Shown: positions 29,801 to 64,000, counted from the stretch's first letter. The stretch: 64,000 bases of DNA from Nageia nagi (GCA_050084985.1 JBITNC010000001.1:115444001-115508000), one strand, 5' to 3'. Translations and numbers: made by a program. The notes: generated by a model not told the origin, from the sequence alone.

Positions 29801-30947
29801 CTGATTATTCAAGGATGTGAAAATGGGAGAGTCTCAAAAAGACTTTTTATTGATGTGGAATGAAGAAAGATGTAAACAAGTTTGTAACTAGATGCTTGGA
29901 ATTTCAAAAGGTGAATGTAGAACACCAATATCTAGGTGGAATATATCTTATCCACATGATATTCCTATGCAAAAATTTCAAAAGATATCAATGGATTTTA
30001 TTGTAGGTTTCCCTAAAAGGAGATTTCAAGATAATGTCATCTTTGTTTTTGTTTTTGCATATAAGTTCATCAACAAAATTATTTGGTTACATGGGTTTTC
30101 TAAAATCATAGTCTCTAATAGAGATTCTAAGTTCTGTTATCAATTTTGGAGAACACTACACTAATCAGTGGGAAATAAATTTAATATTATTGACACTTAT
30201 CATACTCAAATGGATGCTCCAATTGAATGATTCAATAGGATCCTTGAGGACATGTTGTGGATGTATTGTATGGACCAACAAACTAAATGAATTTGGTTGA
30301 GTTTGCTTATAATAACTCTTGTCACTCTTTCTTGGAGATGGCACCTTTCCAGGTACTACATGGAAGGAGGTGTAGAACTCCATTATTATGGGATAATCTA
30401 TAGGATCAAATAGTGATCATGTTAGATCATTTAAGGGAAATGAAGAAACAACTTAAAACAATTAAAAAAAGTCTTAAGGAAGCATATGATCGTTAAAAGA
30501 GTTATGTAAATTTTAAAAGAACTCCTTGATAATTCTTTATGGTAGATAAAGTATTCTTATGAGTTTGACCTATGAAAAGTGCCACAAGATCTACTAAACT
30601 AAATCTATAATTTGTAGGGCCTTTTCAAGTTATAGGAAAAATAAGCATAGTTTCTTATAATCTTTCCAAATGACCTACACTATCAAAGATTCATGACATC
30701 TTTCATATATCTTTTCTTAGGAAATATATTTCTTATCCTTCACATGTTTTTGAATTTTCTCAATTGGATATGGTAGATGTGGCAGCCATTGAGGTGCTTG
30801 TTATGAGAGTTCTTAGTTTTAGAATTAGGAAGCTAAGAAACAGGGAAATAAAGGAGTGTTAATTTCTATGGGATCAATACTCTAAATCTTCTACAACATG
30901 GGAAGATGTTGATCTTATGAAAGAATAATTTTCTTATTTATTTTGAT
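26830..30947 (+). pseudogene. gag-pol of chromovirus copy 1 (Gag, protease remnant, RT, RNase H, integrase, chromodomain), decayed
   Basis: FSKIDL...FKTRYGLYEFLVLPFELTNAPATFM...LVFLNDILIY (28560-28817); ISMDFIVGFPK; terminal TTWEDVDLMKE*FSYLF. Confidence 0.92.
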
Positions 30948-38910: not shown

Positions 38911-40370
38911 AATTATAATGAACTATTTTTAAAATAAGATTGTTTAAATATTAATGAAATTAATATTTAAGAATAGATTTTAAATGTTTAATTATTTGCA
39001 ATGTATACACTAGTTATTATAAAGAGAAAGATTTGCATAATAAGTGTATAGTGGAATTGACTTTAATGTTAATGTAAATTACTTTTGCATTGGTATTGAG
39101 GCAAGTTTTATCAAGCATTGAATTTATAATGTGGTCCAAAGAAGTGGAAATATTACAAAGTGCATAAATTTATGGAGTATATTTGATAAATGTACCCATG
39201 CTATTCTTTGTAATTATCCCTATTATTATGATCATTTCTTACAAAAGTTATGTTCCTTGAAGCACAAATCATGAGAGAAAGTGATGATTAAATATTTAAA
39301 AAATTAGAATGCATATCTTTACATCTCTCCTTATTATGTTGAGTGTATTCATTATGAAAATAGAATACATGAAATCCAAGATATTGGGTTTATATATTTA
39401 TTGGGTTAGAATGAATAAATGTAAACATATCATGTAAATTCATTGCATGTTGCCTTAGTGAGATACAAAAGAAAGTATTTTCTTTGATCCTAAAAGCATC
39501 TATTAAGTGATTCACTTCGAAGGATGATACTGTGGTGATTCAAGGCTTCGAAGATGGGGAAAAATAGGATATTATGTATTACAAATTGTAAATATGATAT
39601 TATAAACATATATCTCTATGAGATATGAATTGTGTAACCTTTATGGTCATATGATGTATTACTTCATTAATTAAATTGTGAATAGCATGGTTGATTTATG
39701 TAAATGAATTTTATATTTAGCATTTAAATTGTATAGTTTTACTTTCATGAGCATGATGTATGAAAAGGAAGGCTAAATGGTAGTGAACAATCTTATTTGT
39801 TTCTATTATCATAGTTTACATTTCAGCAATATTTAATAAACATATTGAGAGTAGAACTTGAATCTATACTTCTTTTCCATAATGCATTCTTGAAAGTATA
39901 GTCATAAAGTTTACTCATTTAAGTTAAGAAAAGATTTAGATGGAAAGTGAATGGTTTGAAGTTATCCTATAGGTGTTAGGAAATTATCAAAGAAAGTGCA
40001 AGGCTAGTTCTACCTCTAAGATAAACATTTAGTCAAAGATAATGACTAGGTTATCATTTGATGAAAGGTAGTAACTATGAGAGTTATGGGTATGTAGTTA
40101 CTATTGGTTAAAGTGGTGGTCTCTTGCATGTATTAATGGTAGGCAATACTACATTGGTTCAATATTAGGGTAGTAATATTTAATGTTGAGTTCCTTTGTG
40201 GGAGGTGATGAAAATGTGATCCCTTTGGCATATGCTAATAGATCACTATCATGGGGTACTATGAAGTGATGGGAAAAGTGTGCCCCTTCTTAGATGTATG
40301 GACCCTAAGAAGAACCCAAAGATCACAATTTATGTAGGTGAGACAAACATTGGAGATATTTAAATCACAT

Positions 40371-43300
40371 GGGCTATAGTAAAGTTTACAGGACCTACAT
40401 TACAGTTGTGGGAATCCTACAAAGCCAAATAAAAGATTCAAGGAGTGAATATTAAGTAGGAGGATTTCATAGTTTCTTTCAATAAGCAATATATAATAGA
40501 ATAATTTTATTATGAAAAAAATGATTCATTATACACTCTTTATCAAGGAAACTTATCAATAGAATAATATGATTACAAATATATTAAAGTGTAGAAATAT
40601 ATACCCAATGATAAAAATGATTTATAAGTTCATAGATCTATTTTGGGGTTAGATGCTAGAATCAAAATAGCAGTAAATATGCATAAGTATCAAACTTTTC
40701 AAAAAGCTTATGATATTTCTCATCAAGCAAAGAGTAACTTAGGATCAAAAAGATCATTCATGAATTTAGCATCTTAAATAAAGATGAGAAATACGAAATG
40801 AGAAACATGAACAATAAAAGGTTCAAGGGAAATAATTATCATTAAAATCATAATTAACCTCAGAAAAAGAACAAAAATAATAATAATGGTGCAAGAGAAA
40901 TATTTATATCTTTTTCACTTATTTGAGATATACCAAAGGCATAAAAAATTTTGATAGAAGGTTGGTTAGTTGAGTATAGCTCCAGGAAAACTAATTTTAT
41001 AAATCAATATCTTAGTAAATATGAAATAAAGCTACCTAGAGGGGTTATAGAATAGGATCTTTATGTAGCACCCTTACATTCCTATGATATAATCTTTGGA
41101 ATGGATTGGATTCTACCTCACAAAGCTTTAATTGAGAATCATGAAAGATGGATAGCATTTTATGACATCAATATATAATGATAAAGGATTTATTATGAGT
41201 GAAGTAATATTAAAATCTATCTTTTTGTTATACAGTTAAAGCAAACAATGTGAAGAGGTGAGATGATTTATGCAATGGAAGTGAAAGAGGTAGAAAATGA
41301 TAAATCATAAGAGAAAATATTCCAACAATACCCTCTTTTACAAGAATTCATGGATATATTTCCAAACAATGTTTTGGTATTACTATCAAAATGAGAATTT
41401 GATTTTTCAATTGATTTGATTCCTGGTGCTAAGCCTATATCAAAGACTCTAAAAAGGATTAATAAAATCATGATGTAGGAGTTAAAGGTACAATTACATG
41501 ATCTGCTAGAAAAAAGGTTTAATTAAGCCAAGTGTGTCACCTTGGGGTGGTTTTGTTCCTTTCATGAAGCAAGATGGTTTTGTGAGGTTATACATAGACT
41601 ATCAAAGGTTGAACAAATTTAGGATAAATACTAGCTATCCTTTACCTTGAATTGGTGATTTGTTAGACCAAATTAAGGATGTCTTCATATTTTCAAAAAT
41701 TGATTTAAGATTTTATTATCACCAATTGAGAATCAAAAGTTTAGATACACACAAAATAAATTTTAAGACTAGATATGGATACTATGAGTTTGTATTGCTT
41801 CCTTTCAAATTAACAACTATACTTGTTTTATTCATGAATCTTATGAACACCATTTTTCATGAGTACTTGGACAAATTTGTTTTGGTATTTTTAAATGATA
41901 TCTTCACTTATTCAAGAAATAAGGAAGAACATGACTATCATCTTAGGAAAGTATTGGATGTACTAAAAAAACACCAACTTTTTAAGAAACTTCCTAAGAG
42001 TGAATTTTATGTACCTCAAGTATAATATTTCAAACATATAATATCATCATAAGGTGTGCTTATAGATTGTAAAGAGATCAAATAAGTTATATTTTTGCCT
42101 GATCCAACCAATATAATAGAGATAAGAATTTTTATGGGTCTTGTTGGTTACTATCATTGATTTGTTAAGAATTTTTCTAGAATAACAAATCTTATTACAA
42201 GTCTCCAAAAATAGAATCAAAATTTTAAGTGGACTGAAAAATATGAGAAAGCCTTTGAAATTCTTATAGAGAAGCATACAACTGCACCGATACTGGCTAT
42301 ACTAGATCCTTTTGGAGATTTCATAATTTACATTGATTCTTCTTTTCTTGGTTTGGGAGATGTCTTTTCTCAAGATGATAGGCTTGTAGCATTTGAGTCT
42401 TAAAAGTTAAAGATTATTGCACTTAATTTTAAGAGATATTATTTGTTACAAAGACCTTTTGAACTTAAGTTAGATCAGTAGAGTTTGAAGTATATTTTCA
42501 ATTAGAATGATCTTAATGCATACATCTTATAACTATGACTAAAATTCATTTTGAATTATTAGATCAGGTGAAATAATATGAAAATAATAATCCATCTTGT
42601 ATTAAGATCAATTAAAATATGGAAAATGTTAATTCTTCAATGAAAGATTTTGAGTACAAACATGGGTTTATGTACTTTAAGGGGAGGATTATTATTCCAA
42701 TATACTAGTGGTATTTGAAAAAGTATCTTGCAAGAAGCAAATCAATCACCTCTTTTTTATCATCCATGGGGTATGAATATGAGAGAAAATCTCAAAAAGA
42801 CTTTTTGTTAATGTGTAATGAAGAAAGATTTGAATGAGTTTGTAACTAGATGCTTATAATGTTCAGAGGTGAAAGTTAGGAAAGTAGAATCCAGGTGGAA
42901 TATCTTATCTACATGATATTCCTATGCAAAAAATAGCAAAAGATATCAATGAATTTCATTGTAGGTCTCCCTAAAATGAGATTTCAACACAATGTCATTT
43001 TTTTTATTGTTGACTATCTCACTAACATGTCTCACTTTATTCCTATAAATACTAAAGATGATGCATGAACTATTGCACATAAGTTCATGAAGAAAATTAT
43101 TTAGTTACATTGATTTCCTAAAATCATAGTCTCTAATAGTGATCATAAGTTTACTTCTTAGTTTTGGAGAAATTTGCACCAAGTGGTGGGAATAGCTTAT
43201 CATCTTCAAATAGATGGTCATACTGAATGAGTTAATAGGGTACTTGAGGACATGTTGTGGATGTATTGTATGGACCAAAAAACTAAATGGTAAGACTACT

Positions 43301-43958
43301 TGTACTTGGTTGAGTTCTCTTATAAAAGCTCTTATCATTGTTCTTTGTAGATGGTACCTTTTGAGACACTATATGGAAGGAAGCATAGAACTCCATTTTC
43401 ATGGAATAATTTGAATGATTAAGTAGTGATTAAGTCAGATCATCTAAGGAAAAAGGAAGAACAACTTAAATGATTAGAAAAAGCCTTAAGGAAGCATCCA
43501 ATCATTAAAAGCGATATGGATATTTGAAAAGAACTCCTCAAGAATTCTTTGTGGAAGACAAAGTATTCTAATAAGTTTAACCTATGAAAAGTGCCATCAG
43601 ATCTACCCAATTGGATCCATAATTTATAGGGCCTTTTCAAGTCATAGGAAAGATAAGCCTAGTTTCCTATAAGCTTTCCAAACCACTCACATTGTCAAAG
43701 ATTAATGATGTATTTCATATATTATTTCTTAGGAAATATATTTCTCATCCTTCACATGTTTTAGAATTTGGTAAATTGCAAATGGCCGATCTAGTGTCCA
43801 TTGAGATGCTTATTATGAGATTTCTTGGTCTTAGACTCAAGAAGCTGACAAATAAAGAAATAAAAGAGTGTAATATTTTGTGGGATCAATACTTTGAGTC
43901 TTCTACAACATCAAAAGATGATGATCTTATGAAAGAACAATTTTCTTATTTGTTTTGA
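40371..43958 (+). pseudogene. gag-pol of chromovirus copy 2, 5'-deleted and decayed
   Basis: RT ORF 41660-42025 (FKTRYGYYEF...LDKFVLVFLNDIFTYS); chromodomain-like ORF 43692-43958; PPT AAAAGGGGAAGGA followed by TGTCATAACCC at 44030. Confidence 0.92.
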
Positions 43959-45020
43959 TGTTTTATGCTCTTATTTGTGATTAAATAATAATAACACAAA
44001 GGATTATGTTATTATTAAAAGGGGAAGGATGTCATAACCCTTTCTTTTTGCATTTATGTATGATTCAATTATTATGTTTGAAGTATGGGGTTATTGCATA
44101 TTTGTGTTTCGAATATTTGATATCATATGCTATTTATATATTTTTGATCTTGATATCATGTGAAATAAGTTTGATACTATTGTGGTTTCATATGATATAA
44201 GAAAATGTAGTCCTATAAGTGAACCACTTTGCTATTTATATGGATATGATTTAACACTGATAGCCTTAAAGGAAAGTTGTTTCATTTTGGTTGAATGAGC
44301 TCCTTGTGTTCATATTCCCTTTAGGGATCATTATTTGAGTGAGAAAGATGATGGATTAGCCTAGTTCTTAGCTTCATATCTACAAATTTAAATAGAAAAT
44401 TAAATAGGTGCATATAGAAATGAATTTACGTATTAGGCATATTTAGATTGTAAGAAAGAAATAAAAGTGTTAAATTAGTTTGTATTCGATTAAAAACAAT
44501 GTAAATAAATAAACATATGGATTGAAGGTAACTTGTAATGGATTCATTTTTTATGCATTTAATTACATAAGCTATTTTTAAAATAATGTGCAAAAGGGGA
44601 AAAAGCTAAAAAAAAATAAAAATAAAAACAAATAGATTTTTATAATTGGTCATTTTATGCATTTTGGGGTTTTGCTCCTAGGGAGAAAATTTCAAGAAGT
44701 TTTGGGAGAAAACTACCTTAATAGGGTTGAGCAATTATTCATGGCCTTTTATACTACTATTTATCATGATTCTTATTATTTTATTGGTTAGTTTATCTTT
44801 GGAAATGAAAAAGAAAAGCTAAAGCAAGGATTCAAATTGTATTTTTAGATTTTTTGTACAAATTTGAATCAGGTTCTCTCCATTTCCATTTTATATGCAT
44901 GAGTCGGGTTTGTTGACTTTCATTCATCTATATGCATTTGAAATTTTGAAATAGATTGGTAAATTGATTTTATGATTTCTTCAATTGTATGGAATTGAAA
45001 TCAAGAGAAAATGAAATGAT

Positions 45021-47909
45021 TATCCAAAAAAGTTAATAATAAAAAAAGTTAAGTTTATAATAGTCTTCACTAACCTTTACAAAATGATTATCCAAAAACC
45101 CATTCTCTATGTGTTGCATTCTCCTTACTAGAACAAAAAAACCACCAATGCAAAATAATTCTATGAACTTGCTAAGACTAAGATACAATGGCATTCCATC
45201 AGGCTTATCTTTTTAGGTGCCTTTACATTAGCTACTTCACCCCCTTAGATAACTAGGAGTACTAAAATATGAAGCCTAATATACACAAAACAAAACATAG
45301 AGTAAACTATCTATAATATTTAGTAAAATATAAAAAAATTCTTTATAGTTGAACTTATAGAATCTGATGTAGTTCTTCCTAAGCAGGATCGTTTTGAGTC
45401 CTTGATGCTTCCCAACCTCTTTATACTTCTTAATTTTTTCTCCTCTTTTGAGTCTGTCCTCTTTTAGTATCTCCTTATGTAGTGTAGGGTTCATAGCTTT
45501 CTTGAAGCTTATTGAAGTCTCTTTGCTTGTTATTTTTGGGATTTCTAACCCTATTTGTTTAGCTAATTTACCTTTGGTCTAGTCAAATACTTGGTCATGA
45601 ATATCTAGAGTCTTCTTCTTTTCTTAGGTCATTAAGAGGTCTTGGTACCTATACTTGAAAGTCTAACTAATCTTTCTTATCTTAAAATGTATAGGGGGAT
45701 TTTGCTCTTCAAAATGTACTACTTGAAATCTTCAAAAAAAAATTGCATTTTGCTCTAAAGTGTCTTCTTCTTGTATCACATCTATGGTTATTGGAGAGGA
45801 TAGATCTCTTAGCATTTGACACCTTCTAATTGAGTTTCTCGTACCCTCACTTTTTATTGGGTTATTTTCCAAACACTTTTTGGCTTCTTATATGAGTCTA
45901 TTCTTCTAAGCCTACTAGCTTAGACCCATCATCAATGAAATTGATGCATTCTCTTGAATAACCCTTGCTAGTTCTAATCATCAAAGAAAAATTCCTTTCC
46001 TCTAAAGCATGGAGTATTACTAATTGATGTATGGCATCTAGTGGGCTCTCCTAAGGTTCACTAGTTAGAGGATTAGGAGATCTCTCCTCCATTATAGGAG
46101 GTTCAATGGACTCCATATCCTTTGGAATTGGTGTCTAATCTTCTTGAGACCTATCAACATTTTCTTATTGTAGCTCTAGTTTTGTTCTCTTTCCTACTCT
46201 TGCTAGAACCTCATCACTTTACATGTCCTTCTCCAAAATAAGTTTTCTTTTTAGTCTGTTACTCCTTCTTTATTCCTCCTTTCCAAAAATATTAGAGAAT
46301 GGTCTTTCTTCCATACTTTTAAATTATTTAACTCTAACTTTTAATTGACCCTTGTGATTATATAGGACCTTCCTTCTCTTAGAGGCTACAATCTCCTTCT
46401 CTTTTGTGTTCTTAACACTACTTCCTCCTTTTGTCCCCCATTTAGCTCCAATTGTCATGAGGATATCATTTGCCTCAACTTCTTCTTAAGATTCAATTTG
46501 TGATGAATCTTCATTGTCCATTAATGGGAAGGACTCACTAGTGGAGGCCTCCTTTTCCATCACTTTCTTCTTAAAGTTTTCAAGGCTTTTTATACATTGT
46601 ACCATTAGATAGGGACCTATGTTGGGGACTTGTATCATTTCTTTAACCTCCTAGATGTTTTTATTAGCTATTTTACTCTTGTTTGAGACTTTTCCTACTA
46701 TCTTCTTACCTAGTTCATAGAATTTACCATCAATAATGACTTTTACCTTCAAAACTTTTCTAGGATACATAGCCAAAGCTCTTTCTACCACTAATTTGAT
46801 GACACCAACATGCAAAGTAAAGAAGCTTGTTCTTGTTTAAATTTTTCAATTGAGATTGCCAATGAATTAAAGATAAATATGAGGAAGTTTACCTTATCCA
46901 CATATGGAAATATGAAGTGATTTAGCAAGAAAACATATGAAGTGAGAAGAAATTTGTATCTCCCTTCTAGCATGACATATTTGATAAATATTGAAGCCAC
47001 ACCACCCTTATTTGATATTTCTAGATATCTTTATATTGTATTATTTTTAGTAAAAATTTATTTCTTACCTCAAGTTTGTTCAATTTCTCCTCTCTTCAAA
47101 TATGTAAACCTTCATTTGGAAGCATGATAGCCTATGCTATCATCTCAGGATTGAATACAACCTCCCTTCCATTAACCTCACACCTACCATTCTCCCATGA
47201 TCTTCCTACTTCTAGAGAAATTTCATCATCATGCCTTATGCATGTATTAATAAAGTTCTCTAACCCACCCTTGCAAATTATATTCCATAATAAAGGGTTG
47301 TTCTTGAACTCATATAGGGAGGAAGGCTTTACTCTTACTAGATCACCCCTTATCTCCATAGCTCTAAAACACTCCTACTACACTCCTATACAGCTTAGAT
47401 GATTGTAAGCTTGAAATTGGAATTCTATTTTTTACACCCTTGCCACCCTCGATAATTATGGCCACAAGTGCCTCTCATACTTGAAAGTGCTTATCATGCT
47501 TGATGGAAAATTTGATGTAGGGTGGCTCATGTTGAGGGTCATTGGGAGCCCAACATGGTGCCTTGCGATGATTCCTAATTCTTTGTTGGAACTAACACAT
47601 CATGGATCCATCATATCTTTTAGGAAAACTCATGTTTCTTTAGTCATCCAAATAGGATCGATGTTGATCACCATCCACTAAGAGATGGAGGCTCTCCATT
47701 TAATAATCTTGGACCATTTTGAAAGAGTCCTCTAAATAGGATTTGAACTCCTTATTATAGATAAGCATGTTCTAGCATGGTAATATGACTAGGTTTCTTA
47801 AGTTCTTATGCTAACTAAGTGTTACTGATGAGTCATCAACCCTTAAACCTACTTCATATTAAGAGGACAAATTTTGAAATGGCACCTCTGTTTCTACCCC
47901 ATCCTCCAT
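45021..47909 (-). mobile_element. Inserted fragment carrying a second decayed 'ORF3'-like gene (start 47359) and a K/E-rich tail; probably LINE-derived
   Basis: It interrupts the third LTR. ORF MEIRGDLVRVKPSSLYEFKNNPLLWNIICKGGLENF...SWENGRCEVNGREVVFNPEMIA continues in 46791-47000 and 45276-45494. Confidence 0.55.
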
Positions 47910-49529
47910 TTCTAACAATTTTTTACTTTAAAAATAAAAATATTTATATAAAAAATCTAATATTAAAATAAAGTTATGTTAGGTGGTGCCATAAGGTTTG
48001 GATAGTAAGTGTGGAGAGGTACGACATGCCACAGGGTGATGCCACCCAAGTCGCTTTTCAATTGGGGTCATCTGCATCCCATACCCCTTTGCTGTGTGGG
48101 GAGGGTGATACAAGGAATGGCCTCCAAGCCATGTAGCATGTGGTTCTAGTGCAAGCACCTCCCCCTCACTATGTTGAGTGGGGTAGGGTTTGGGCTACAG
48201 GCCACCCCCAATAATTGATGTTTTGAAAATTTAAATCAATTTCTTTGATTTTTAATCTTAATTTTAAATTTTAAGTTTTTAAAATTGTAAAGTTTATTAA
48301 TATTTTGAATTTCAAATTTTAATTATCTATTTAAATATTTTAATATTTAATTTTAATAGTTTCAAATAATTAAATATTGGGAATTAAAATTTAATGAAAT
48401 ATTTTTAAAATAAGATTCTTTGAATATTAATGAAATTAATATTTAAGAATAGATTTTAAATGTTTAATTATTTGTAATATATACACTAGTTATTATAAAG
48501 AGAAAGATTTGCATAATAAGTGTATAGTGGAATTGACTTTAATGCTAATGTAAATTATTTTTGCATTGAAATTGGGGTAAATATTATTAAGCATTGAATT
48601 TATAATGTGTTCCAAGGAGGTGGAATTATTATAAAGTGTGTAAAATTATGGAGAATATTTGACAAATGTACCTATACTATTATTTGTAATTATCCATATT
48701 ATTATGATCATTTCTTGTACAATATATGTTCCTTGAAGCATCAATCATGAGAGAAAGTGTTGATCAAATATTTAGAAAATTAGAATGCATATCTTCACAT
48801 CTCTCCTTGTTATTTTGAGTGCATTAATTAAGAAAATAGAATACATGAAATCCAAGATATTGGGATTAGATATTTATTAGGTTAGAATGAATAAATGGAA
48901 ACCTATCATGTAAAGGAATTGCATGTTACCTTAGTGAAATATAAAATAAAGTATTTTCTCTTATCCTAAAAGCGTGTAGCTAGTGGTTCACTTTGAAGGA
49001 TGATACCTTGGTGGTTCATGGCTTTCCATATGGAGAAAAAAAGGATATTATGTATTACAAATTGTAAATATGATATTATAAACTTATATCTTGATGAGAT
49101 ATGAAATGTGTAACCTTTATGGTCATATGATATTTTGCTTCATGAATTGATTCATTAATAACATGGGTTGTTTATGTAAATAAATTTTATACTTAGCATT
49201 TAAATTGTATAATTTTACTTACATGAGCATGATGTATCAAAACTAAGCTTAAATAGTAGTGACCAATATTGTTTTTTTTTATCCTCATAGTTTACATTTC
49301 AGTAATGTTTAATTACCATATTGAAACTAGAAATTAAATATATGCTTCTTTACCATAATGCATTCATGAAAAGTATAGTCATAAAATTTTTTCATTTAAG
49401 TTAAGAAGAGAATTTGATGGATAGAGAATGGTTTGGAATTAACTTATAGGTATTAGGAAATTAAGATAGAAAATGCAAGGCTAGTTCTACCTCCAAGATA
49501 AACACCTAGTCAAATATAAGGAGTAGGTT

Positions 49530-50730
49530 ATAATGTTAGTATTAGGAATAGGAAATGTTTAAAAATTTGATGACTAGAGTGCAAAACCCTCCTAACAATG
49601 AAGAAAGAGTTGGTAATAATAGTGTTGATCTAGTCAAATCTAGGATAGATCAAGAATTAGCTAAAGACTTGAAAAAGATTTTGTTTCCAATATTTAAATA
49701 GAAAAAGGAGGTGAAGCTAATGAGTTGTGGTTGGAAGAGATGAAAACCTACTTTTCCATGAAATATATATCTCCTAAAGCTCAAATTGCTTGGGCTATAA
49801 TAAAGTTTGTAGAACTTGCATTACAATTGTGAGAATCCTACAAAGTTGAACAAAAGATTCAATGAGTGAATGTTAAGTGGAAGGATTTTATAGTTTCTTC
49901 TAAGAAGCAATATATAAAAGAATAATTTTATCATGAAAAATATGATGAATTCTACACACTTCAGGAAGGAAACTTATAAGTAGAATAATATCATCATAAA
50001 TTTGTTAAATTATTGAAATATATACCCAAGGTTAAAAATGATTTATAATTTTATAGATTCATTTTAGGGTTAGATGCTAGAATCAAAATAGTAGTAAATA
50101 TGCATAAGCCTCAAAATTTAGAAAAAGCTTATGATCTTTCTCATTAAGCAGAAAGTAACTTAGGAGCTAAAAGATCATTCATGAATTATAGCTTCCTAAA
50201 TGAAGATGAGAAACAAGAAATGAGAAACATGAATAATAAAGGGTTCCTCAAGTGGGAAAAATATCATCAATAATAAAACAATAAAAGGTTCAAAGGAAAT
50301 AATTATTAGCAAAATTAGAATCAACCTCAGAAAAAGAACAATAATAATAATAGTGGTTAATGAAAAATCTTTATATCTTCTTCACTTATTTGAGATATAT
50401 CAAAGGCACAAAAAATTTTGATAGAAGGTTGGTTAGTTAAGTATGGCTATGGGAAAACTAGTTTTATAAACCAATGTCTTAGGAAAGTTGAAATACAACT
50501 ACCTAAAGGGGTTATAGAATAGGATATTTATGTAGGACCATTACATTCATACCATATATTCCTTGGAATGAATTGGATTCAACCTCACAAAGCCTTAATT
50601 GACTATCATGAAATATGGATTTAGTTTTTTGACATCAATCTATAAAGGAAAAGGATTTACTATGGTCAAAGTAATGTTAACTCATATCTTCTTTATGTTA
50701 TTCAATTAAAGAGAACAATGTGAAGATGTG
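49530..50730 (+). pseudogene. gag-protease fragment of chromovirus copy 3 (pol deleted)
   Basis: Collinear with ~26960-28160; flanked on both sides by LTR sequence through deletion junctions. Confidence 0.85.
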
Positions 50731-53700
50731 ATATATTAACTATGTAACCTTTATAGACATATAATATATTACTTCATTAATTGATTTGTTAATAGCATGG
50801 TTAGTTTATGTAAATGAATTTTACACTTAGCATTTAAATCGTATAGTTTTATTTGCATGAGCATGATGTATGAAAAGTAAGGTTAAATAGTGGTGAATAA
50901 TCTTGTTTGTTTCTATCATAGTTTACATTTCAGCAATATTTAATAACATATTGAAATTAGAACTTGAATCTATGCTTCTTTACTATTATGCATTCTTGAA
51001 AAGCATAGTCATAAAGTTTACTCATTTAAGTTAAGAAGAGACTTAAATGGAAACTAAATGGTTTGGAGTCAACCTATAGGTGTTAGGAAATTAAGATAGA
51101 AAATGAAAGGCTAGTTCTATCTCTAAGATAAACACCTATTCAAAGATAATGAGTAAGTTGTCACTTGATGAAAGGTAGTAACTACGGTAGTTATGGGAGG
51201 GTAGTTACTATAGGTTAATGTGGTGTCCTCTTGCATGTATTATTGGTAGGAAAGAGTACATCAATTAAATATCATGGTAGTGAAATATAATGTTAACTTT
51301 CATCACAAGAGGTGATGTAAACTTGATCCACTTGGCATATGCTAATAGATCACTATCATGGGGTAGCATGAAGTGATGTGAAAATCATACTCCTTCTTAT
51401 GTGTATGGACTCTATGAAGAACCTAAATTTCATAGTTAATATAGGTGAGACAAACATGGGATATGTTTGAATCATAGGTTCTCAGTTAGATAAAGTGCAT
51501 GGTAGATGCATTGATGAAAACTAGCTATCACATGACTTGGGTAAAAATGAAAACTAATAATTTCCATCCACTTAAGGTTGGTCTGCAATGATAACATTAA
51601 ACTCAAACTTGGAATGCCAGAACCTATATATGCATATGTAATGGTATATCCTTATAAATTAAAAATTTGTGTCTATTTTAAGGTAGAATTTAGATGGATG
51701 TTTCATAAATTTTAGGATTATTTTTTATTTCATGTGATCTAGGAATTCATTAAAGGCTTTAAAATGGGGTTCCTTACAAAGTATTTCATCTATTAGATCT
51801 TTATAAGGTAGATATTGAAAATTTGAGAAATTATTTCTACATGATGGTATAAAATATTGAAAAAGGCCATTCTTCTTTTCTTTATTAGGTATTTGAACTA
51901 GGCTAACTACTTTTGACCATTCAATAATTAAATCACTAATGAGTTGGTCTTATTTTAATTACAAGTTGTACATGTATAAAGGAGAAGGTTCTTCTCATAT
52001 GTATAAATGGTATCTTTCAATAAATATTTTAACTAAGTCATCAAAATATTGGATACTTTCATTGGGTAAATTTAAAAACCATAAAAACAAATTTGAGCAT
52101 AAAGTAAATGAAAAAATTTTAGGCAATAAATCATCATCATCTTCAAATGAAACAACTTCTAAATAATATCTTTACAAATGTGATTTAGAGTTTGAAAAAC
52201 CATCAAATATTGAAAAAGTTACCTATTTTTCATACCTTATTTGACAGATACAATAGTAAAAGGGGTTTTCATTTCCTCTTGAAATTGTGTCAGGTGCAAA
52301 TTATTGATGGAAGCCATTATATAATACTTTTATTTCTTTATTTAAATTATTTCATTGACTTTATCATGCAAATGTTCTTCATTCTTGGATGCTACATTAG
52401 TATTCTTATTCTTATCTTTAGGCATTTCTAAAAATATTCTAAAGAAATGAAGCTTTTCCTTCTCTAATGTTATGACCAGATTATTAACCATTTCGATTTT
52501 ATGCTCTAGTGAAGCAAATTCAAAGTTAAAGTTGAGATTTAGGAAATTTAGCTCTCATTTTAATATATCTCATATTCAACATCAAACCATCCTGGCCTTC
52601 ATCTTATACAAAATTCAATTATAGTGTGTTCCTCTACCATTCAGACATCCTATATGGTTGGTCTATTAGCTTCCTTAGTATCAATCACATCAATCAATTT
52701 TTCCTCATTAATGTTATCTTCCTATTCTTCTTCATAGTTAAGAAATATTTGTTATATACTAGTTATTCTTTATTTTCCCTTTATGTTTATAAATCTTGGT
52801 TCAAAGTTGAGGTTTGTAATAGAGAGACAAGTTTTCAAGCTCAATGACATCACTAGGATCTAATTCATTAGGAATTGGTTATTATTTAATACATAGGAAT
52901 ATCATTTAGTATATGGGAATTTGTAAATTTTATGAGGTGACTCATTGTAGGGAATAAAAATACTTACATACTTAGTGACATGGGGTTATGGTCATATCAT
53001 TTTGGGTTTATTGCATCATTTTCTTTTTTTGGCATACTAATGATCGATTTCTAAGGTAGATCCTAGGAGATGTTTTACTTCAATGGTCATTTCATATATG
53101 TATTGGAAAAAGAGAGGAAAACATTCTTTTTATACTAACAATTTTCTCCCTTATGGACTAGATAATATTTTTATGAGTACCTAGATAACAACAGGGATGA
53201 GTTCTTCATTTAATTTTTATTGGGCATTTCCATTTTCTTAGAACTCTTCATGATCTTTTGAATGACTAAAATCATCAAGAGTACTATTATATTCATAATT
53301 ATGGTATAATTTTTAAACTCATTAACTTTATCACCTTGGTGCATTGGCATAGTTGTTTTTGGCTCTTTTCATTTTTAGTTGTACAAGAGGATAGTTTATA
53401 GTAGCAACATGAAAGATGATAATTATCCAAAATGATCTAATTGACATTGACCTATAAAACTTAGATTAATGAAAGGTACAAACATGTACTTTACCTCTCT
53501 AAAAAAATATGATATTTGACTCAAAGGATATTAACTATGAGATTATATGTATTTTGGAGCCACCAATCCATCATCAACCCATCACCATCACTAGGATCCC
53601 ATCATCATCACTTGGATACCATTATAGATTACCTTATAATCTTACTCATTATTGTCAACAAACCTTTAATTCTCAGAATATCATGCATAATTACTTCAAA

Positions 53701-54479
53701 AGGATCGTAGTATTGTAGAACTCATAATAAAATAAAATCCATATATGATAGGTGGCATTGTGAAATACTAGCCAATAATGAAGCAAGTATATTACCACCT
53801 ATCAAGGATTCCATATCTTGTCATGATTTCTCATGGAAAATTATTCCACCTTTATAGATACTAGATCTAGTTCCAAGAATCATCTTTTATGTTATGGTGC
53901 ATGTTGGCCAAGATTTGTTCTTGGGCTTATCTCTAAATTAACATATTATCATAAAATAGAAAGGTATATCAATATGCACAATGAAAAGGCTATTTAATTA
54001 CTTAAATATATAAATTATTACAAATACCTAAAGGGGGTATTTTAAATAAATTAAAATCCCTTTTTTACATCGAGAGGCGTTTCTACAGCTGCAGCATGGG
54101 GGTGGAGTGGGGGAGCAAAATGTCGCATGTGAGTCCATCCGTTAAACAATTGGCGAGAAAATAATTTTTTTAAAATTAAAATTATATAGCCAACTGAAAT
54201 ATTAAAAGACACATCTTTTCAAAAATTAATATATAAATGGAACGAAGAATATCAAACATCATAAAAAATCATTCCCAAATCAATCGAGAGATGCAGTGAA
54301 TTCGAACAAGCAAAGTTAGAACAAAAGATTGTAAAAATAGAAGAGAACTTTAATTTTATTGTAAGTTAATTCTCTGCTATTGTAAATATATTTTTACTGT
54401 AATATTTCTTATTTCTTATTTTACATACAATTTATACTCTAAATTCTTTTGCACTTCTATTCGTATAAAACTTTATCAA

Positions 54480-54872
54480 AAAATATCTCTAATGGATATT
54501 GTCAAAATGCCTCTCATGGATATTGTCAAAATCGTAGTCTTTTCTCCAGTAAAAGTTAGGGTGTCGTTTAGAAGTACAAATCCATCGCATCCCTGCAAGA
54601 GAAACTTATAGAGATCACGATTATCCAACATATAAAAATAAAATTCATAAAGATATCTCCACATTCAGACATATTTTTTTGTGATAATCTTTATTGACAT
54701 TGTCATACGTTAACAAAACCGTCATGAAAATGAAGGCGAAGACTATGGATAACGCATGTGGACATGTTTTTTCATAAAAAGATGCGCTAAGTTACGCATG
54801 AGAGGTAATATAGCCACAGCATACAATCAATACCAGTCTGCATATCAACTCAATATTTTTTATCTTTGCCAT
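54480..54872 (-). pseudogene. Captured class III peroxidase fragment, copy 1 (premature TAA in place of the mature N-terminal Gln)
   Basis: ATG at 54872; HA*LSASFYEKTCPHALSIV; shifted-frame LRLHFHDGFVN|GTATG; TTGCAG|GCDGFVLLNDTLTFTGEKT. Confidence 0.9.
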
Positions 54873-54989
54873 CCTTCAAGACTGTGGGGACCTGAGATGC
54901 ATAGGGGAGTGCTTTAATAAGGATGGCATTTGATGGAGAAAGAATTTACATTTCTCCAAACTACAGAAAAGGGAGAAAACTTTATCAAA

Positions 54990-55381
54990 AAATATCTCTC
55001 ATGGATATTGTCAAAATGCCTCTCATGGATATTGTCAAAATCGCAGTCTTTTCTCCAGTAAAAGTTAGGGTGTCGTTTAGAAGTACAAATCCATCGCATC
55101 CCTGCAAGAGAAACTTACAGAGATCACGATTATCCAACATATAAAAATAAAATTCATAAAGATATCTCCACATTCATACATATTTTTCTGTGATAATCTT
55201 TATTGACATTGTCATACGTTAACAAAACAGTCATGAAAATGAAGGTGAAGACTATGGATAACGCATGTGGACATGTTTTTTCATAAAAAGATGTGCTAAG
55301 TTGCGCATGAGAGGTAATATAGCCACAGCATACAATCAATACCAGTCTGCATATCAACTCAATATTTTTTATCTTCGCCAT
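54990..55381 (-). pseudogene. Captured class III peroxidase fragment, copy 2: exon 1 (55381-55218), 116-bp intron (55217-55102), exon 2 from 55101
   Basis: Signal peptide plus AQLSTSFYEKTCPHALSIV; LHLHFHDCFVN|GT; AG|GCDGFVLLNDTLTFTGEKTA; ILTISMRD. Confidence 0.92.
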
Positions 55382-55498
55382 CCTTCAAGACTGTGGGGAC
55401 CTGAGATGCACAGGGGAGTGCTTTAATAAGGATGGCATTCGATGGAGAAAGAATTTATGTTTCTCCAAACTACAAAAAAGGGAGAAAACTTTATCAAA

Positions 55499-55889
55499 AA
55501 ATATCTCTCATGGATATTGTCAAAATGCCTCTCGTGGATATTGTCAAAATCGCAGTCTTTTCTCCACTAAAAGTTAGGGTGTCATTTAGAAGTACAAATC
55601 CATCGCATCCCTACAAGAGAAACTTACAGAGATCACGATTATCCAACATATAAAATAAAATTCATAAAGATATCTCCACATTCAGACATATTTTTCTGTG
55701 ATAATCTTTATTGACATTGTCATAAGTTAACAAAACAGTCATGAAAATGAAGGCAAAGACTATGGATAACGCATGTGGACATGTTTTTTCATAAAAAGAT
55801 GCACTAAGTTGCGCATGAGAGGTAATATAGCCACAACATATAATCAATACCAGTCTGCATATCAACTCAATATTTTTTATCTTCGCCAT
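55499..55889 (-). pseudogene. Captured class III peroxidase fragment, copy 3 (splice donor GT mutated to TT)
   Basis: MAKIKNIELICRLVLIICCGYITSHAQLSASFYEKTCPHALSIV; LCLHFHDCFVN|TTATG; the GCDGFVLLNDTL exon is retained. Confidence 0.9.
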
Positions 55890-56734
55890 CCTTCAAGACT
55901 CTGGGGACCTGAGATGCATAGGGGAGTGCTTTAATAAGGATGGCATTCGATGGAGAAAGAAGTTACGTTTCTCCAAACTACAGAAAAGGGAGAAAAGCCA
56001 ATGCATTCAATGCTTTACAAACCAAAACACGTAAATATGTGGCAAATTGAAGCTTTAAGTTGGCTCAATGGAAAAGTAAAAAATTATCATACAGTTGCTT
56101 CTATTTTAGATGTTGTTTTCATTACGAATTTGTTTGATCAATAACTTGGGAATTCATTCTATATTATATAAAGTCCAATAATCTGACAGGCTTTTTTTGA
56201 ACAATAACTCAAGAATTCATTCTATATTAGATAAAGTTCAATAACCTTAATAGATTTTTAAGACAAACTTTTTAATAGTTGAAAAATCATTATCATCCAT
56301 ATTGTTTTTGTGTAAATGCACTCCTGGGTCCCAACAGTTTCAGATACCATTCCCACAAGGAAGTCGCGTATAGATATGAAGTGGCATTTAGGAATAAGAT
56401 ATGTAGATTTTGTGTTCTATTGGAGATACACTATGCACCTATTTGAAGACATTAACTTCAATTAGTAACCTTAGATTCTCTTTTGAGTGTAAGAATTTAA
56501 AACTCTTTTTCTTATTTATTAATAACATATCATTAATATATGAGGGGATAGTTTGGAATTTGGGCTTTTTTTTTAAACACTTCTATGTTTACTTTCTTGT
56601 TAACTTTCTTAACATGAGTTAATTATTTAAGTATATTAATGCTTGAAAATTATGTAAATATCTTTAAGTTGTTATTTAAATAAATATAATGATGTATTCT
56701 CTTATGTTTTTGTAGTAAATTTGTGACAAAGATA

Positions 56735-59700
56735 ATGAATTCTGAAGAGCAAAGAGAACAACAGAGATTAGAACAACATAGACAATATCACAGAGATTAT
56801 AATAGACGATGACGTGAAAGAATGACTGAAAGTGACAAAGAGAGAGAAAGACAAAGACAAAGAGAAAATCGAGCAAAACGTAGGGCAGAAATGACAAATG
56901 AACAAAAACAACGACAAAGAGCAATCGATTATGAACGAAAGAGACAAAATCGTGCTAATATGTCTAATGAAGAAAATGAAGAACAAAGAGCAATACACAC
57001 TCAACAAATGAGAGAAACACGTGCAAAAATATCAGAAGATCAAAGAGAAGAAGCACGCCAAAGATATATGAAACAACAAACAACAAACCAAGAAAATCAA
57101 ACACAATTTCAACTTGAGGAGATTAGGAGAAAACGTGCGAATGACCGCCAACTTCAGCGTGCTAGACGAGCTGAGGAAGATAGTCAAAGAGAGGAAAGAA
57201 TACATCGTAATAATGTTCATGATAATGTAAGTGTTTCCGATGCATCCTCTTTTTTTGAAAGAAATGCTAAAAATATAATTATGGTGAGACAAACACAATA
57301 TGAAGCAACTGAAATGGGAGAGACACCTCCAACACATCGTTTAAGAGAAGGAAATGTAGAAGGTTTACAAATGAATGCAAATCAAACAAATCATAATAGA
57401 ACATATGGACATACTAATACAAATATTCAAATAGATTTCAAAGAAATACAAACCTTATTTTGAAGTCAACTACAAAAACTTGCATCACCATCGATGTGTT
57501 ACATTTGCCAAGAATCTTATCCTGGAATGAAGGTGTTATCTACTACTGAAGGTCCGGCATGTAATAGATGTAGACAAGAGAAAATTCTTCCTCATCGATT
57601 TTCTTCCTCAAATCACATGGATCCTGGATCACAACCATCAGAATTATCAAACTTAACACAAATTGAAGAAATGTTGATAGCACGTGTCAATCCAATATTA
57701 CAAGTAACACATGCTACCGGAGGCCAATATAAGTACAAAGGGCATACAATTAGCTTTCCACAAGAATTGAAACAAATTGCGAAGGTACTACCTCATCCTA
57801 TAAATGAATTACCAGTCATTATTGTTCGAAGAAGAGATCAACGTGGTACAAATTATAATTTCACAGTAAATAAAGAGAGGGTCTTTAAAGCTTTGAAGTA
57901 TAAGATAGAAAATGATAAGTTTTATAAGGATGTGCAAATTAATGAAGATGTTCTAAGAGATCTCCCAGCTAATACAGATACAAACATATTTAACATTCTA
58001 AACTCTATTCATATGGAGTTTAATTCTGATATGAATGAATATGTAGTAATGGGTCCAACAATTGAGATGGATGAAGGAAATGTCATTAATCACACAACAT
58101 CTATGGCCTGTAAACCACCCAATGCACCAAGGGAGATGGAATTAATTCGTGCATGGGTCAACAACCCTAATGTAGAACCAATAACACTCATTGATTGGCC
58201 TGGAATTGGAGCATCTCCTATAAATGAGTATATTACAGAAGGGTTGCTTGATATGGCATTTCCAACATTATTCCCAAATGGAAACTGTGATTGGATAGAA
58301 CCAAGAAATAGAAAAGTTTATCTTCATGAATTTGCAAAACATTTATTACGATATAGAGATCATCGTTTTGGAAAGCATCCAAGATTTAGGTATTTCATAA
58401 TGAACATGATAATGAGACACCGTGCTCAGAATTCTTCAGCAGTGTTTGTGAAGAAGAGTCTTCAAGATTTGCCAACTACAATCCATGAATTACGAGAACA
58501 CATGGATAATATTCCCCAATCACATTTAGCAGATTGTTTAATGCATTTTGGCTCTACATTAAGAGGCACAAGATCTTATTGGATGAAGAGTCATGCTGAA
58601 TTAAGTGATTTATTACATCAAATTGGATCTCCAACCATTTTTTTCACTTTAAGTGCAGCTGATATGTATTGGCCTGACCTTCATGCGTTAATGCCAGGAA
58701 CATCACCATCTGATTCAAGAGAAGCACAAAAATGGCGAAGAAAAAATATTATTGATTACCCACATATTGTAGCTCATTACATGCATCTACGAAATACAAT
58801 TTTTCGTAAAGAGGTATTGCAAAAACAAATGAAAGTCAAAGAATATTGGTGTAGATATGAATGGCAACATAGGGGATCTCCACATGTGCATGGTTTTCTA
58901 TGGATAGAGGGAGCTCCAAACATGGATAATTTAGATTGGACAAGTGAAGAACAAGTGAAAAAAGCACAAACATATTTTGATAATATTGTGCATGCATGGA
59001 ATCCTCGAGGAGACCCACATCAACGAAATATACAGGTATGCATAAAGTATCTATTTTTTTAATTTTATGTTTTAAATACATATATATAATTAATAACCAT
59101 TGTATATATTTCACAGCTTCTTCAAAATATTAATCAACACCCATGTTTGAGGAATACACGTCAACTTGATCAAGTAGACTTAGATCTTGATTATGAAGAG
59201 ATTCTCAATTGTGTTGAGCGTCACACTGTATGTAGAGAAGGTGCATGCTTACGCAAGAAAAGAGGAAAGATGGTTTGTAGGTAAATACTTATGACTACTT
59301 ATATATATTTATAATTTTAAATTCATCATCCTTTATGTTAAACTAATTTTTCTTTTTATAGGTATAATGCACCATGGCCTTTATCTTTAGATGGATCCAA
59401 ATTATATGAAGATCCAGAAACCAAAGATAAAAAGTATGAACCAATAAGAAATGATGATCGAGTCAATACACATAATCGACATATATTACAATTATGGAGA
59501 GCAAATGTAGATTGGCAACCTGTTCTATCAAAGCATGCTGTTATCAATTATATTGCTAAATATGCTGCTAAGGCTGAGAAAAGTTCAGAAACCTATCAAG
59601 AAATGTTGATGCGAATTACAAATTTAGAAAATGATGATGATTTAGCAACAAGAGCATATAGGCATCTTCTAACGGAAACAATTATTGAGAGAGATATAGG

Positions 59701-61914
59701 AGCACAAGAAACATGTCATATGTTATTAGAGCTTCCATTGGTTGAATGTAGTAGAGTTTTTATTTCTCTAAATGTTGGACGAAAAGTTTTCAAGGAGGTG
59801 GAAAATATTGATGAAGAAGAAATAGAAAGAAATGGTAAATCTTTAATTGATGGATATATTCAACGACCATGTATGATGGAAACTATCTCACTTATTGATG
59901 TAGCTAGATCATGGACATATAATCCAAGATGAAGAAGTGAGTTGAAATGGAGCACTAGAAAAAATGCAGCTATTGTGAGGGCATGGCCATGTTTTATGAC
60001 CATTCCTGAAAAAGAATCAGAAAAATTTATTGAATTTTGTTGGTCAGAGTTGTTACTTTACAAGCCATTTAGAAGTATAGAAAGAGATATCGGGGTTGAT
60101 GATAGCACAATCATAACAAATTGGGAGGCATTCAACTATAGGCCTTGGCATATTGAGAGAATGAATAATATCCAAAATACAGAACAAGAATATCACAATG
60201 ATTTAGAAGATGATGATGAACGAACAGTTCATCAGAACACTATAGAGAATGAATGGGAAATTATAGCCCAATTACATCGTGGAAATCACTTTACAAGGAC
60301 AGAAATAGATATGCTTGGTAGAAGGGATGTTGATAGACAAGCACAATGGGATAATGAATATATATCAGAAGAATACACAAAAAAAGCAATAAATTGGATA
60401 ACCAGAATGAAACAAAATGGTGCATTTATTGATGATGATGCCCCTTTAAATTACCTATATGAGAGCCTTAGCATGAAACAAAAACAAGCATATGATATAA
60501 TAATGACACATTATAATCAGGAACAACATATAGACCCTTTATATATGATAATTCAAGGAAAAGCAGGAACAGGAAAATCGTATCTAATTGGAGCACTTCG
60601 TCAAGCATTTCAAGACTTACCATCTATAAAACATTCTCCCCTTCTTTTACTTGCACCTACTGGAGTTGCTGCATTCAACATTGGTGCCACTACAATCCAT
60701 GGAGCACTTCGAATTCCTATCACAGACTTTGATAAATTAGAGGGATCAAGATTAAATACTTTTCAAGAAGATATGAAACATGTAAAATATATATTGATTG
60801 ATGAAATGAGCTTCATAGGGCAGAAAATGTTGGAACACATAGATTCTCACCTTCGAGAAGGTTTTCCAGAAAAATCAAATATATGTTTTGGAGGTAGGTC
60901 AATGATTTTAGTAGGTGATTTAGGACAGTTACCACCTGTTATGGATAGACCACCATATGCCACTAATAGACATGCAAGATTATTATGGCAAAAGTTCACA
61001 ACTGTTATAACATTAGATAGAGTATTTCGACAAGAAGGAGAGAGTGAAGATCAAAAAAGGTTTCGTCAACTTTTAATTAATTTAAGAGATGCAAATCCAA
61101 CTGAAGATGATTGGAAATTATTGATGACAAGAACAAATTCAAATCTAGATCCGGCTATAAGGGATGATTTTGATCAGAATATTCATCTATTTGCAACTAA
61201 TGAAAATGTGCATAATCATAACAGGTATGAATTTATTTTAAATAAATCCATTTTTTAGAATTTTGAATTACTTACTAATTTTTGATATAATATTAATATA
61301 TTGCTAACTAATGAAATATTTTTTATCATAATAGGTTACAACTACTCAAGTTAAATTTTCCAGTAGCACGTAGTATTGCAACAAAATCAGGGAGCACAAA
61401 ACAAGGAGGGGGTGATAGTGAAGAGCTTGAAATTGAGTTATTAATTGCAAATAATGCAAGAGTTATGCTAACATCTAACTTATGGACAGAAGCTGGACTT
61501 GTTAATGGTGCTTTGGGATATGTTAGAAAAATTGTATACAAAACAGGGAATTCTCCACCTGATCTACCAACATATGTTATGGTAGAATTTGATCATTTTA
61601 CAGGATGTTCACTTGAAGGTAAAGCTATTCCAATTATACCTATAGAAAGAGGTCGAACACGTCAACTTCCATTACGATTGGCTTGGGGCTTAACAATACA
61701 TAAATCACAAGGTTTGACACTTAATAAAGCAACAATAGATATTGGAGAAAGGGAAAGGCAAGGTTTAACATTTGTTGCTATATCTCGCATCAAAGCATTG
61801 GATGGACTTAGAATTTTAGAACCGTTTCCATATGATCGTTATGCAAAATTGAAATCAGGAAAAGGAGTTGTGCAAAGGAAAGCTGAAGAAGAAAGACTCA
61901 AATCTTTGGAGTAG
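56735..61914 (+). pseudogene. Helitron RepHel transposase (HUH Rep plus PIF1 helicase), 4 coding exons 56735-59035, 59117-59280, 59362-61224, 61335-61914; ~1635 codons with 3 in-frame TGA
   Basis: Rep motifs FFTLSAAD, RYEWQHRGSPHVH, WRANVDWQ and YIAKY; PIF1 motifs GKAGTGKS, LAPTGVAA, DEMS, GDLGQLPPV, TIHKSQGLTL and VAISR; GT-AG introns of 81, 81 and 110 bp preserve the frame. Confidence 0.95.
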
Positions 61915-62095
61915 CCAAAAATCAATATTACTATGATTAATTTTGATTTTTTTTAAATCTTACTCAATATTATTTGTCAATGACTCCTTATGTATTAGTC
62001 ATATTCATTTGTTAAACATTATTTTTAAAATAATATTTGCATTTGTATTGTATCTCTTAATATTATAATTCAATAATCACGTGATGATGGATGCC

Positions 62096-62250
62096 ACTAG
62101 CTTTGATATAACTTATATATCAAAAAACACCGAGAGATATCATTTCGAGGCGCCTATCTCATTTCTTGGTATTGCTATATCCAAGATAGGCGCCTCTAAA
62201 TGATATCTCTCAGCGTTTTTTGATATATAAGGGGTTATATCAAAGCTAGT
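62096..62250. repeat. 155-bp foldback (inverted repeat with ~65-bp arms)
   Basis: 62096-62159 ACTAGCTTTGATATAAC-TTATATATCAAAAAAC..GAGAGATATCATTT.GAGGCGCCTATCT is the reverse complement of 62184-62250, with 3 mismatches and one 3-bp indel. Confidence 0.95.
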
Positions 62251-62254
62251 TATT

Positions 62255-64000
62255 AACACCATGAAAGGAATAACTAAGTTGTAAAAGTGCAGATATTTGG
62301 ACATCTTAGCCATTATCACCATTATAAGATAATTCCCATAGCATTTGGAGAGGCCCTCAATGAAATACATGAAACTATTAGCCCAAGTTTATTTTTGTAT
62401 AGGCAAAAGATGAAGAAGGGTAGTAATTCCAACAATCTCACTTTTTTTTACATACATCACATTGAATAATAAATTTTTTGATATCTTATTTCATTCTAGT
62501 CCAATAGAAGAAGAAGCTTACTCATTTGTAATCTTCAAAAAAATAGCATATGGTAGTCAAAGTAACATACAATAACTCTTAAATTATTATCTCATAGTAT
62601 GAATAATTGGTAGATAGTACCTTGATATCCTTGAAATGTAGAATCCCATCATACAAAGAAAAATAGGGTTCACTAGCAGGGTCAATCTAGAGTTGGTGAA
62701 TCAACAATTGAATATAGTTTTTATGGATTCATTCTTGTTTAAATTGATCAAGCCATCAAGGAACTAAATATGAAATTGATAGAAGTACCACAATAGCCTT
62801 AAAATTTCAATAAATAAAATCAACAACCACATTTTCTCTATCCTTTCGATACATGACATCATAATCATACCCTACAAAATTTTTAACCTACTTTTATTAT
62901 TTGAGAGTTGATATTATTTTTTGAGAAATTATTTCTAAATATGATGATCCATTCAAATAATAAAGTGTTGAATAATGAGATATGGTTTTCATCATTGAGA
63001 AATGTGAATAATAACTAATATTTATTTCTCATAGGTGGATTTAGCCAAATTTTTACTTAAGAAGACCTTGTTATTGAAAGCCAATATGACTATCATATTT
63101 TATCAATATTTTTCACAACATTATATGCTTGAGGAAATGTAGCTCTCCAAGTAAGGAAATGGATTTAAAGTTTTGAAACAAAAGCTTTAATGTAATATAT
63201 TAGACCTTGAAAAACCGTAGGTCATAGCTCTTGAAATCTACCATGATCTCTTGAGGATGTCTCATAAAGCTCATCAACTAGTCAAAAAGAGAGAAATCAT
63301 ATCCTTCTTATACAAAATTCTTGATAAACCCTTTCACAATATCATCCAATGAGTTAATAGAGATTACTAGCAAGGATCTATACCATTCAACTACTTTTTA
63401 CCTAAATATAAGGATAAGTAGCCTCATCATTATTTAATGTTTTATTATATTAAAATTTGTACCCAAGAAATCAATACCTTAGCAATGTTCCTAGGTTTGT
63501 TTCTTAGTATCATCATGAGTAAGTAGAACTTTGATAACTTTAAATGGTACATATCATGTATTGGTAGGAAAAGCTAATAGATTGGCATTATTCTATACTG
63601 GAAAAGTATTTTTAGTAGTCATGGGTTGAGTAGAGATTCTCATAAGAAAAACTTAAAGAGTAAGAGCCTAAAGAGGAATACGTCCAAGTGAAATAGAATA
63701 ATCTACACCTAGATCTTCTAATTATAATTAGGAGTTCAAAGAATTTAATGTACTCATGGGTATTTCTAGCATCACTTCTAGTAAGTCTATAAGATGGTGG
63801 TGGTATGGTTCAATATTCAATCAATTACAAGAATTGATCATTTTATTAATGAAAAAATAGTCATTAATAAGATCCAACACCATAAGAAAGTAATCTAACC
63901 AAAAATAACTAACAATAATTAGTTATTGTGGTAGTAAGACAACACATAGAAATGGTCTATGGGTTCACATCCCACCAAGAATTCCAAAACATAATTCTTG
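62255..64000 (-). mobile_element. Highly decayed Ty3/Gypsy pol remnant (integrase core start; RT traces)
   Basis: TWANSFMYFIEGLSKCYGNYLIMVIMAKMSKYLHF (~62285-62390) matches the W.DISMDFIEGLPK...IMVVVDRLSKYAHF pattern; PTVFQGL at ~63200-63225. Confidence 0.7.

Follow-up and report, generated by a model that had tools for sequence, protein, structure and literature searches.

A window of 64,000 nucleotides from Nageia nagi (GCA_050084985.1 JBITNC010000001.1:115444001-115508000; the window is the whole stretch analysed, and positions are counted from its first letter) contains, at 54467-55996, three head-to-tail units which, as read from their sequence, are the 5' end of a class III peroxidase gene, preserved as a dead fragment without coding function. 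The units lie on the minus strand, upstream of the transposase gene RepHel of a Helitron-like element, and were multiplied in place after the fragment had been joined to a neighbouring high-copy block. We give a slightly better than even chance to the view that the peroxidase array is true cargo inside this element, which would then begin at A|TT (54039/54040) and close with CTAG|T (62249/62250). The event is most likely of a known and ordinary kind, dead passenger DNA taken up by one minor transposon lineage.

The units fill 54467-55996 with lengths of 509, 509 and 512 bp and start-to-start distances of 509 and 508-509 bp, and are composed as follows.

55485..55996, minus strand: unit 1 (rightmost, first on the minus strand), ATG at 55889; exon-1 front to 55755, HFHDCFVN piece to about 55726, exon 2 from 55610
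54976..55484, minus strand: unit 2, ATG at 55381; signal peptide plus QLS..IV to 55247, LHLHFHDCFVN ending at 55218, intron 55217-55102, exon 2 from 55101 to about 55012, then a 24-bp duplication
54467..54975, minus strand: unit 3 (leftmost), ATG at 54872

On the minus strand, each unit starts with a core promoter and leader of about 107 nt containing a TATA-like TATTAAA, which is kept in every unit about 45 nt upstream of the ATG. A 26-residue signal peptide ending in SHA follows, and the translation reads MAKIKNIELICRLVLIVCCGYITSHA|QLSTSFYEKTCPHALSIV. After QLSTSFYEKTCPHALSIV the frame is shifted, and the units continue with (S)L(R/H/C)LHFHDCFVN, a GT..AG intron of 116 nt in phase 0, and exon 2, GCDGFVLLNDTLTFTGEKTA..SMRG. 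About 15 codons of exon 1 (mature residues ~20-34, ~45 nt) are deleted, with a frameshift, and exon 2 breaks off near residue 77, closing in the 24-bp duplication. A preliminary description of the window had outlined three such units (leader, ATG, signal peptide, QLS..FYEKTCP, LRLHFHDCFVN, 116-bp intron, exon 2), and this anatomy was confirmed on the minus strand. The same holds for its statement that the intron between FVN and GCD stands at a conserved place, as the GT..AG intron of 116 nt in phase 0 matches intron 1, whose conserved position in class III peroxidases is between Cys2 and Cys3 (bioRxiv 10.1101/2024.01.25.577222). Capture at the DNA level, which had been proposed on account of the retained intron, is likewise supported, the piece having kept its intron. 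The 24-bp tandem duplication is present in 2.2 copies at the minus-strand end of each unit (54480-54532, 54989-55041 and 55498-55550) and converts ..ILTISMRG to ILTISMRGILTISMRD.

For identification, the three coding pieces of a unit were searched one by one against the PDB sequences. The first piece gave a single match, to residues 38-56 of Pvi9, with an E-value of 0.96 that is weak alone; the second matched residues 36-47 of HRP C1A with an E-value of ~1, and all 12 of its 12 PDB matches were class III peroxidases; the third matched residues 48-77 of peanut peroxidase with an E-value of 0.0019, and all four of its matches were again of class III. The matches are collinear and cover mature residues 1-19, 35-47 and 48-77, while the Pfam family PF00141 reached an E-value of 0.093 on the middle piece, short of the cut-off. 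As the single E-values are weak, identity as a class III peroxidase follows from the order of the pieces, the exclusive match lists and the intron at its conserved phase-0 place. The units carry the N-terminal mark of the class, a signal peptide followed by QLS..FYxxxCP (with the Gln of QLS replaced by a stop in unit 3), as well as the distal-His motif RLHFHDCFV and, separating Cys2 from Cys3, intron 1 in phase 0, after which exon 2 opens at GCDG. Neither the proximal His, nor exons 3-4, nor any further peroxidase motif was found anywhere in the window, which thus holds no complete gene. In their signal peptide, QLS, FYxxxCP, RLHFHDCFVN, phase-0 intron 1 and GCDG..GEKTA..S.RG, the units resemble HRP C1A, peanut PNP and switchgrass Pvi9; unlike these, they retain only residues 1-19, 35-47 and 48-77 in a broken frame, and exons 3-4 and the proximal-His region are absent. 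For annotation, this assignment averts a false 'peroxidase' gene call at the site.

The units are 96-97% alike overall and 96-98% identical over 300-nt probes, with 15-20 differences per pair at ~509 sites, the majority of them transitions. Unit 3 has a TAA stop where the Gln of QLS stood and a Cys-to-Gly exchange in HFHDCF, and unit 1 has lost its splice donor through mutation of the 5' splice GT to TT. The Arg codon CGC of LRLHFHD is kept by unit 3 only and reads CAC in unit 2 and TGC in unit 1; this is the typical pattern of CpG decay, unit 3 keeping the ancestral LRLHFHD. TTTT, a 4-nt microhomology, is found at the unit-unit joins. The first 18 plus-strand nucleotides of each unit (54467-54484 in unit 3) are shared with the high-copy block to the left, and since all three units have this tail, triplication took place in situ, after the join to that block and not in the donor locus.

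Contigs of four public runs (X1, X2, X4 and X8) were aligned to 53300-58300; depth is one figure per contig, and only large steps recurring in all four runs were used. The features concerned are listed below.

54040..54484, plus strand: candidate 5' region, a separate high-copy block, defined by depth steps and loose ends, with A|TT at 54039/54040; it contains TATATAAA at 54230-54237 and GTAAGT at 54361-54366
55997..56619, minus strand: low-copy segment of 623 bp adjoining the peroxidase pieces on their promoter side
56620..56734, plus strand: RepHel leader common to most siblings, with a splice-acceptor-like ttgtAG at 56710-56715
56735..61914, plus strand: RepHel, ATG at 56735
62096..62249, plus strand: 3' terminal foldback of 154 nt, CTAG at 62246-62249, flanking T at 62250

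The array and the adjoining 623 bp (~54485-56619) form a low-copy block with a depth of 0-30, roughly one-tenth that of the RepHel body, which is repeated from 56620 rightwards (X1 depth ~95-240). X1, X2 and X4 each contain a contig that matches from 56620 on and is preceded by the same 113-160 foreign nucleotides. This shared sequence places the breakpoint 56619/56620 within the family's sequence rather than at the end of an element, and implies that most RepHel siblings carry something else upstream of 56620. An X1 contig of 714 nt (depth 10, 7 mismatches) spans 55936-56649, so that the junction of array and RepHel occurs outside this assembly as well. On the other side, an X2 contig of depth 181 aligns up to 54484, with small insertions, and then goes on as different sequence; most copies of the block 54040-54484 continue differently after ~54484. 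As the majority continuations at both breakpoints (~54484 and 56620) are absent from the whole window, a clean insertion interrupting one otherwise intact foreign transposable element does not fit. Within the array, X2 and X4 contigs part from the window exactly at the start of the 24-bp repeat (55548 and 55039).

The high-copy DNA on the left consists of two blocks, parted by a depth trough at 53985-53995 that has the same shape in X1, X2, X4 and X8. In X1, depth is ~870-1120 at 53634-53967, falls to ~55-70 in the trough, rises through 284 (54033) and 593 (54097) to ~1290 (54109), and stays high through 54458 (up to ~1500). Given this trough in all four runs, 53634-54458 was rejected as a single uniform long terminal repeat (LTR). 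At the left edge of the right-hand block, 24 contigs with unlike flanks were found in X8, with loose ends at 54065 and an agreement of 0.49; an edge so heterogeneous reads as that of a transposon ending near 54040-54066. On these depth steps and loose ends, A|TT at 54039/54040 is our candidate for the 5' terminus of the Helitron-like element, and its flanking letter A (54039), together with T at 62250, is compatible with an A|T target. The site A|TT at 54459/54460 was rejected as the 5' end, the majority copies of the high-copy block aligning through to ~54484.

The 3' end is fixed by a sibling from a JGI metagenome contig (L001; Ga0099853_1000351, 1190-6259), which is 86% identical to the window over 57335-62009 (4.7 kb) and has the same 3' foldback and CTAG end, homology stopping at 62252. 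No peroxidase piece occurs within the 1.35 kb before its Rep open reading frame (ORF), and its first 675 nt match nothing in the window, so that L001 cannot place the 5' end. The 5' leader of L001 is completely different, and the metagenome evidently includes plant DNA. Between the two siblings the arms of the foldback are kept (62096-62249 against 6108-6257 in L001), and the loop at ~62160-62185 is not. By the evidence of the majority contigs in X1, X2 and X4 and of L001, the peroxidase segment is absent from most siblings, as expected of lineage-specific passenger DNA. Comparison with siblings, which the preliminary description had suggested, thus yielded relatives without the array (L001 and the majority contigs), and none showing the cargo together with both ends. 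Its assignment of the array to a Helitron as cargo is partly supported, in that the segment is missing from most siblings; location between both termini depends on a 5' end that we infer.

Several observations weigh against the array being cargo. The RepHel body differs by ~0.9-1.0% from high-depth contigs of its family (X1 6/698, X4 10/1001) and the units are 3-4% apart, which hints that the array is older than the split of this RepHel copy from its family. The low-copy block apparently exists in one to a few copies, and L001 is without any match to the window upstream of 56744. The 5' terminus is a candidate, and 54040 shares with the 3' end neither an inverted repeat nor any other terminal signature. 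Finally, the protein searches described below did not find the donor gene.

Part of this evidence also favours a different account, which we regard as possible, with clearly lower probability: the array would not be cargo, and the Helitron, truncated or recombined at 56620, would have no 5' terminus and would adjoin an assortment of broken pieces comprising a retrotransposon LTR, the end of another transposon and a peroxidase remnant or repair patch. In its favour, this copy lacks the usual 5' part, most siblings differing upstream of 56620; at either edge the low-copy block is joined illegitimately to a truncated repeat; the divergence of 3-4% among units stands beside that of ~1% between the RepHel body and the family contigs; the surroundings are a mosaic of nested, truncated retrotransposons; and the block is very low-copy, with about one-tenth the depth of the RepHel body. 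Truncation leaves unexplained, however, why a high-copy block of the same orientation, with a terminus-like edge and an A|T-compatible flank, lies directly upstream, and the downstream peroxidase exons are absent from the whole window. If it were true, the site would be a mere junction of broken repeats.

The depth of the block 54040-54484, about ten times that of the RepHel body, and its normal continuation into other sequence would also suit an origin of the array in another high-copy transposon, namely the family of this block (such as a retrotransposon whose leader includes a variable stretch), with the Helitron inserted or recombined later. We consider this unlikely: no LTR, primer-binding site (PBS) or coding feature is found right of 54040 on the plus strand, the remainder of such a transposon does not resume past 62250, and a surplus of depth at termini is what non-autonomous Helitron derivatives give (PMC11417382).

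If the array is cargo, a piece of ~1.1 kb from a peroxidase locus, comprising ~730 bp of upstream DNA, the leader, exon 1, intron 1 and the first ~30 codons of exon 2, would have entered, as a DNA copy, the 5' part of RepHel elements of one lineage and been mobilised with them. It would have landed between the 5'-terminal region (~54040-54484) and 56619/56620, 115 bp before the RepHel ATG, taking the place of the sequence that most siblings have there. The likely route would be 'filler' synthesis by repair or template switching rather than read-through at the element end, since each junction lies within family sequence. Exon 1 would already have been short of ~45 nt before the triplication. 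After the join, a stretch of 509 bp (18 nt of the element plus the promoter-proximal peroxidase part) was duplicated twice in place via TTTT, and the copies have since decayed, acquiring CpG transitions and a stop codon and losing a splice site. The plus-strand signals TATATAAA at 54230, the donor-like GTAAGT at 54361 and the acceptor at 56715 suggest, as sequence motifs, that the antisense cargo may sit in a leader intron of RepHel, a position that would explain why it is tolerated.

An extension of this thought, that the RepHel family uses its own leader intron as a tolerant slot for host DNA and that the peroxidase modules here are sources of antisense or small RNAs directed at a host peroxidase gene, is in our estimation quite improbable. 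Still less credible is a working module in which three outward-facing promoter/first-exon copies would control the donor peroxidase gene or the element through transcripts or small RNAs. The TATTAAA kept in each unit ~45 nt before the ATG and the antisense orientation of the array to RepHel would agree with such a function; against it, the public-run search found no RNA run containing the stretch, the units show neutral decay, visible in the preponderance of transitions, the stop codon and the loss of a splice site, and most siblings are without the array.

As regards the donor, an X8 contig of depth 8.2 has the LRLHFHDCFVN codons (36 nt) next to 55998-56061 and resumes at 56213, leaving out 151 nt of a repeat region; this links the segment 55997-56619 to peroxidase exon 1 in that other organism. 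Most simply, the segment is the peroxidase gene's own upstream DNA, with a probable promoter, and the X8 contig may derive from the donor or its orthologue, for which it is a candidate. The repeat region contains a 63-bp tandem repeat in 2.1 copies, 79% alike, at 56128-56259. In an X1 contig, 56292 is connected back to 55655 via 12 extra letters, which indicates another copy, in organism A, with a 650-bp tandem unit that covers the upstream segment, the leader and exon 1 and extends into the intron; as this duplication is distinct, the array has been rearranged more than once. In protein searches, the 45-residue exon-1 piece retrieved only an unrelated repeat protein among 1.8 billion representatives, a 75-residue ORF had no homologue within its length class, and the ORFs of the window were not present in the protein collection searched.

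Capture of gene fragments at the DNA level is classical for plant Helitrons, as in maize, Arabidopsis and rice, and has been explained by 'filler DNA' and read-through models. Like these captures, the peroxidase fragment retains an intron, is truncated at both ends, is non-functional, lies in a non-terminal region and occurs in only some members of the family. Unlike typical ones, it stands upstream of a RepHel gene and not in a short non-autonomous element, has been triplicated in place, is apparently of very low copy number, and belongs to an element whose 5' terminus is a candidate. Double-strand-break repair patches also copy ectopic gene fragments into plant genomes, and the truncated pieces, illegitimate junctions, TTTT microhomology and tandem duplication beside a junction are like such patches; these need no transposon, whereas here the patch lies between two blocks of transposon families.

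The preliminary description had called cargo inside an element with a nearly intact transposase unusual. This does not hold, as HELIANO reported 20 protein domains stably captured by autonomous Helitron-like element (HLE) families, and HLE2 elements are present in 13 of 74 sampled land-plant species (PMC11417382). With such autonomous families (captures of RPA, OTU, endonuclease, GIY-YIG and others; PMC11417382) the present element shares extra host DNA beside RepHel; their captures, however, are coding domains at a conserved position in most copies, and here a decayed non-coding fragment is found that most siblings are without. Nor could the HLE2-like character ascribed to the transposase be recovered in the layout of the element: short terminal inverted repeats and a T|T insertion were sought and not found, the flanks are A and T, and inverted-repeat pairings of the 5' region with the 3' end scored no better than shuffled controls. 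A paralogous empty site was not found within the window, where the flanks 51707-54470 and 62250-64000 are unique. The Rep ORF had no match in the PDB, and neither it nor a 22-nt pattern from the 5' block found anything in the viral and prokaryote-genome collections.

Should the array be cargo, it would be one more case of a Helitron-like element acquiring and moving a host gene fragment, with the added points that the fragment lies upstream of the transposase gene, perhaps in a leader intron, and was amplified in place after capture. The fragment is usable as a lineage tag for tracing this RepHel subfamily; the array opens no new question.

To the left of the candidate terminus, the window contains plus-strand retrotransposons and probable retrotransposon sequence on the minus strand.

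53610..53960, minus strand: left context, with a PBS-like TGGTATCCAAGT (53621-53610) and an LTR-like high-copy block to its right
24585-32000, 38911-45000 and 47908-51706, plus strand: three related copies of an LTR retrotransposon, 80-87% alike

Contig depth rises sharply at ~53634, beside the PBS-like TGGTATCCAAGT, and a weak match to Retrotrans_gag (E-value 0.074) is found on the minus strand at 52171-51998. The left-hand high-copy block looks like an LTR, and the left flank of the Helitron is probably a truncated minus-strand LTR retrotransposon into which the Helitron inserted. The plus-strand retrotransposon has a good tRNA-Met PBS (TGGTATAAGAGC) at 26729-26740, directly after the LTR end; its third copy is internally deleted to LTR, 1.2 kb of internal sequence and LTR, and ends at 51706. 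Within RepHel, two tandem copies of 69 nt, 71% alike, are located at 56891-57028, in the charged N-terminal region of the frame.

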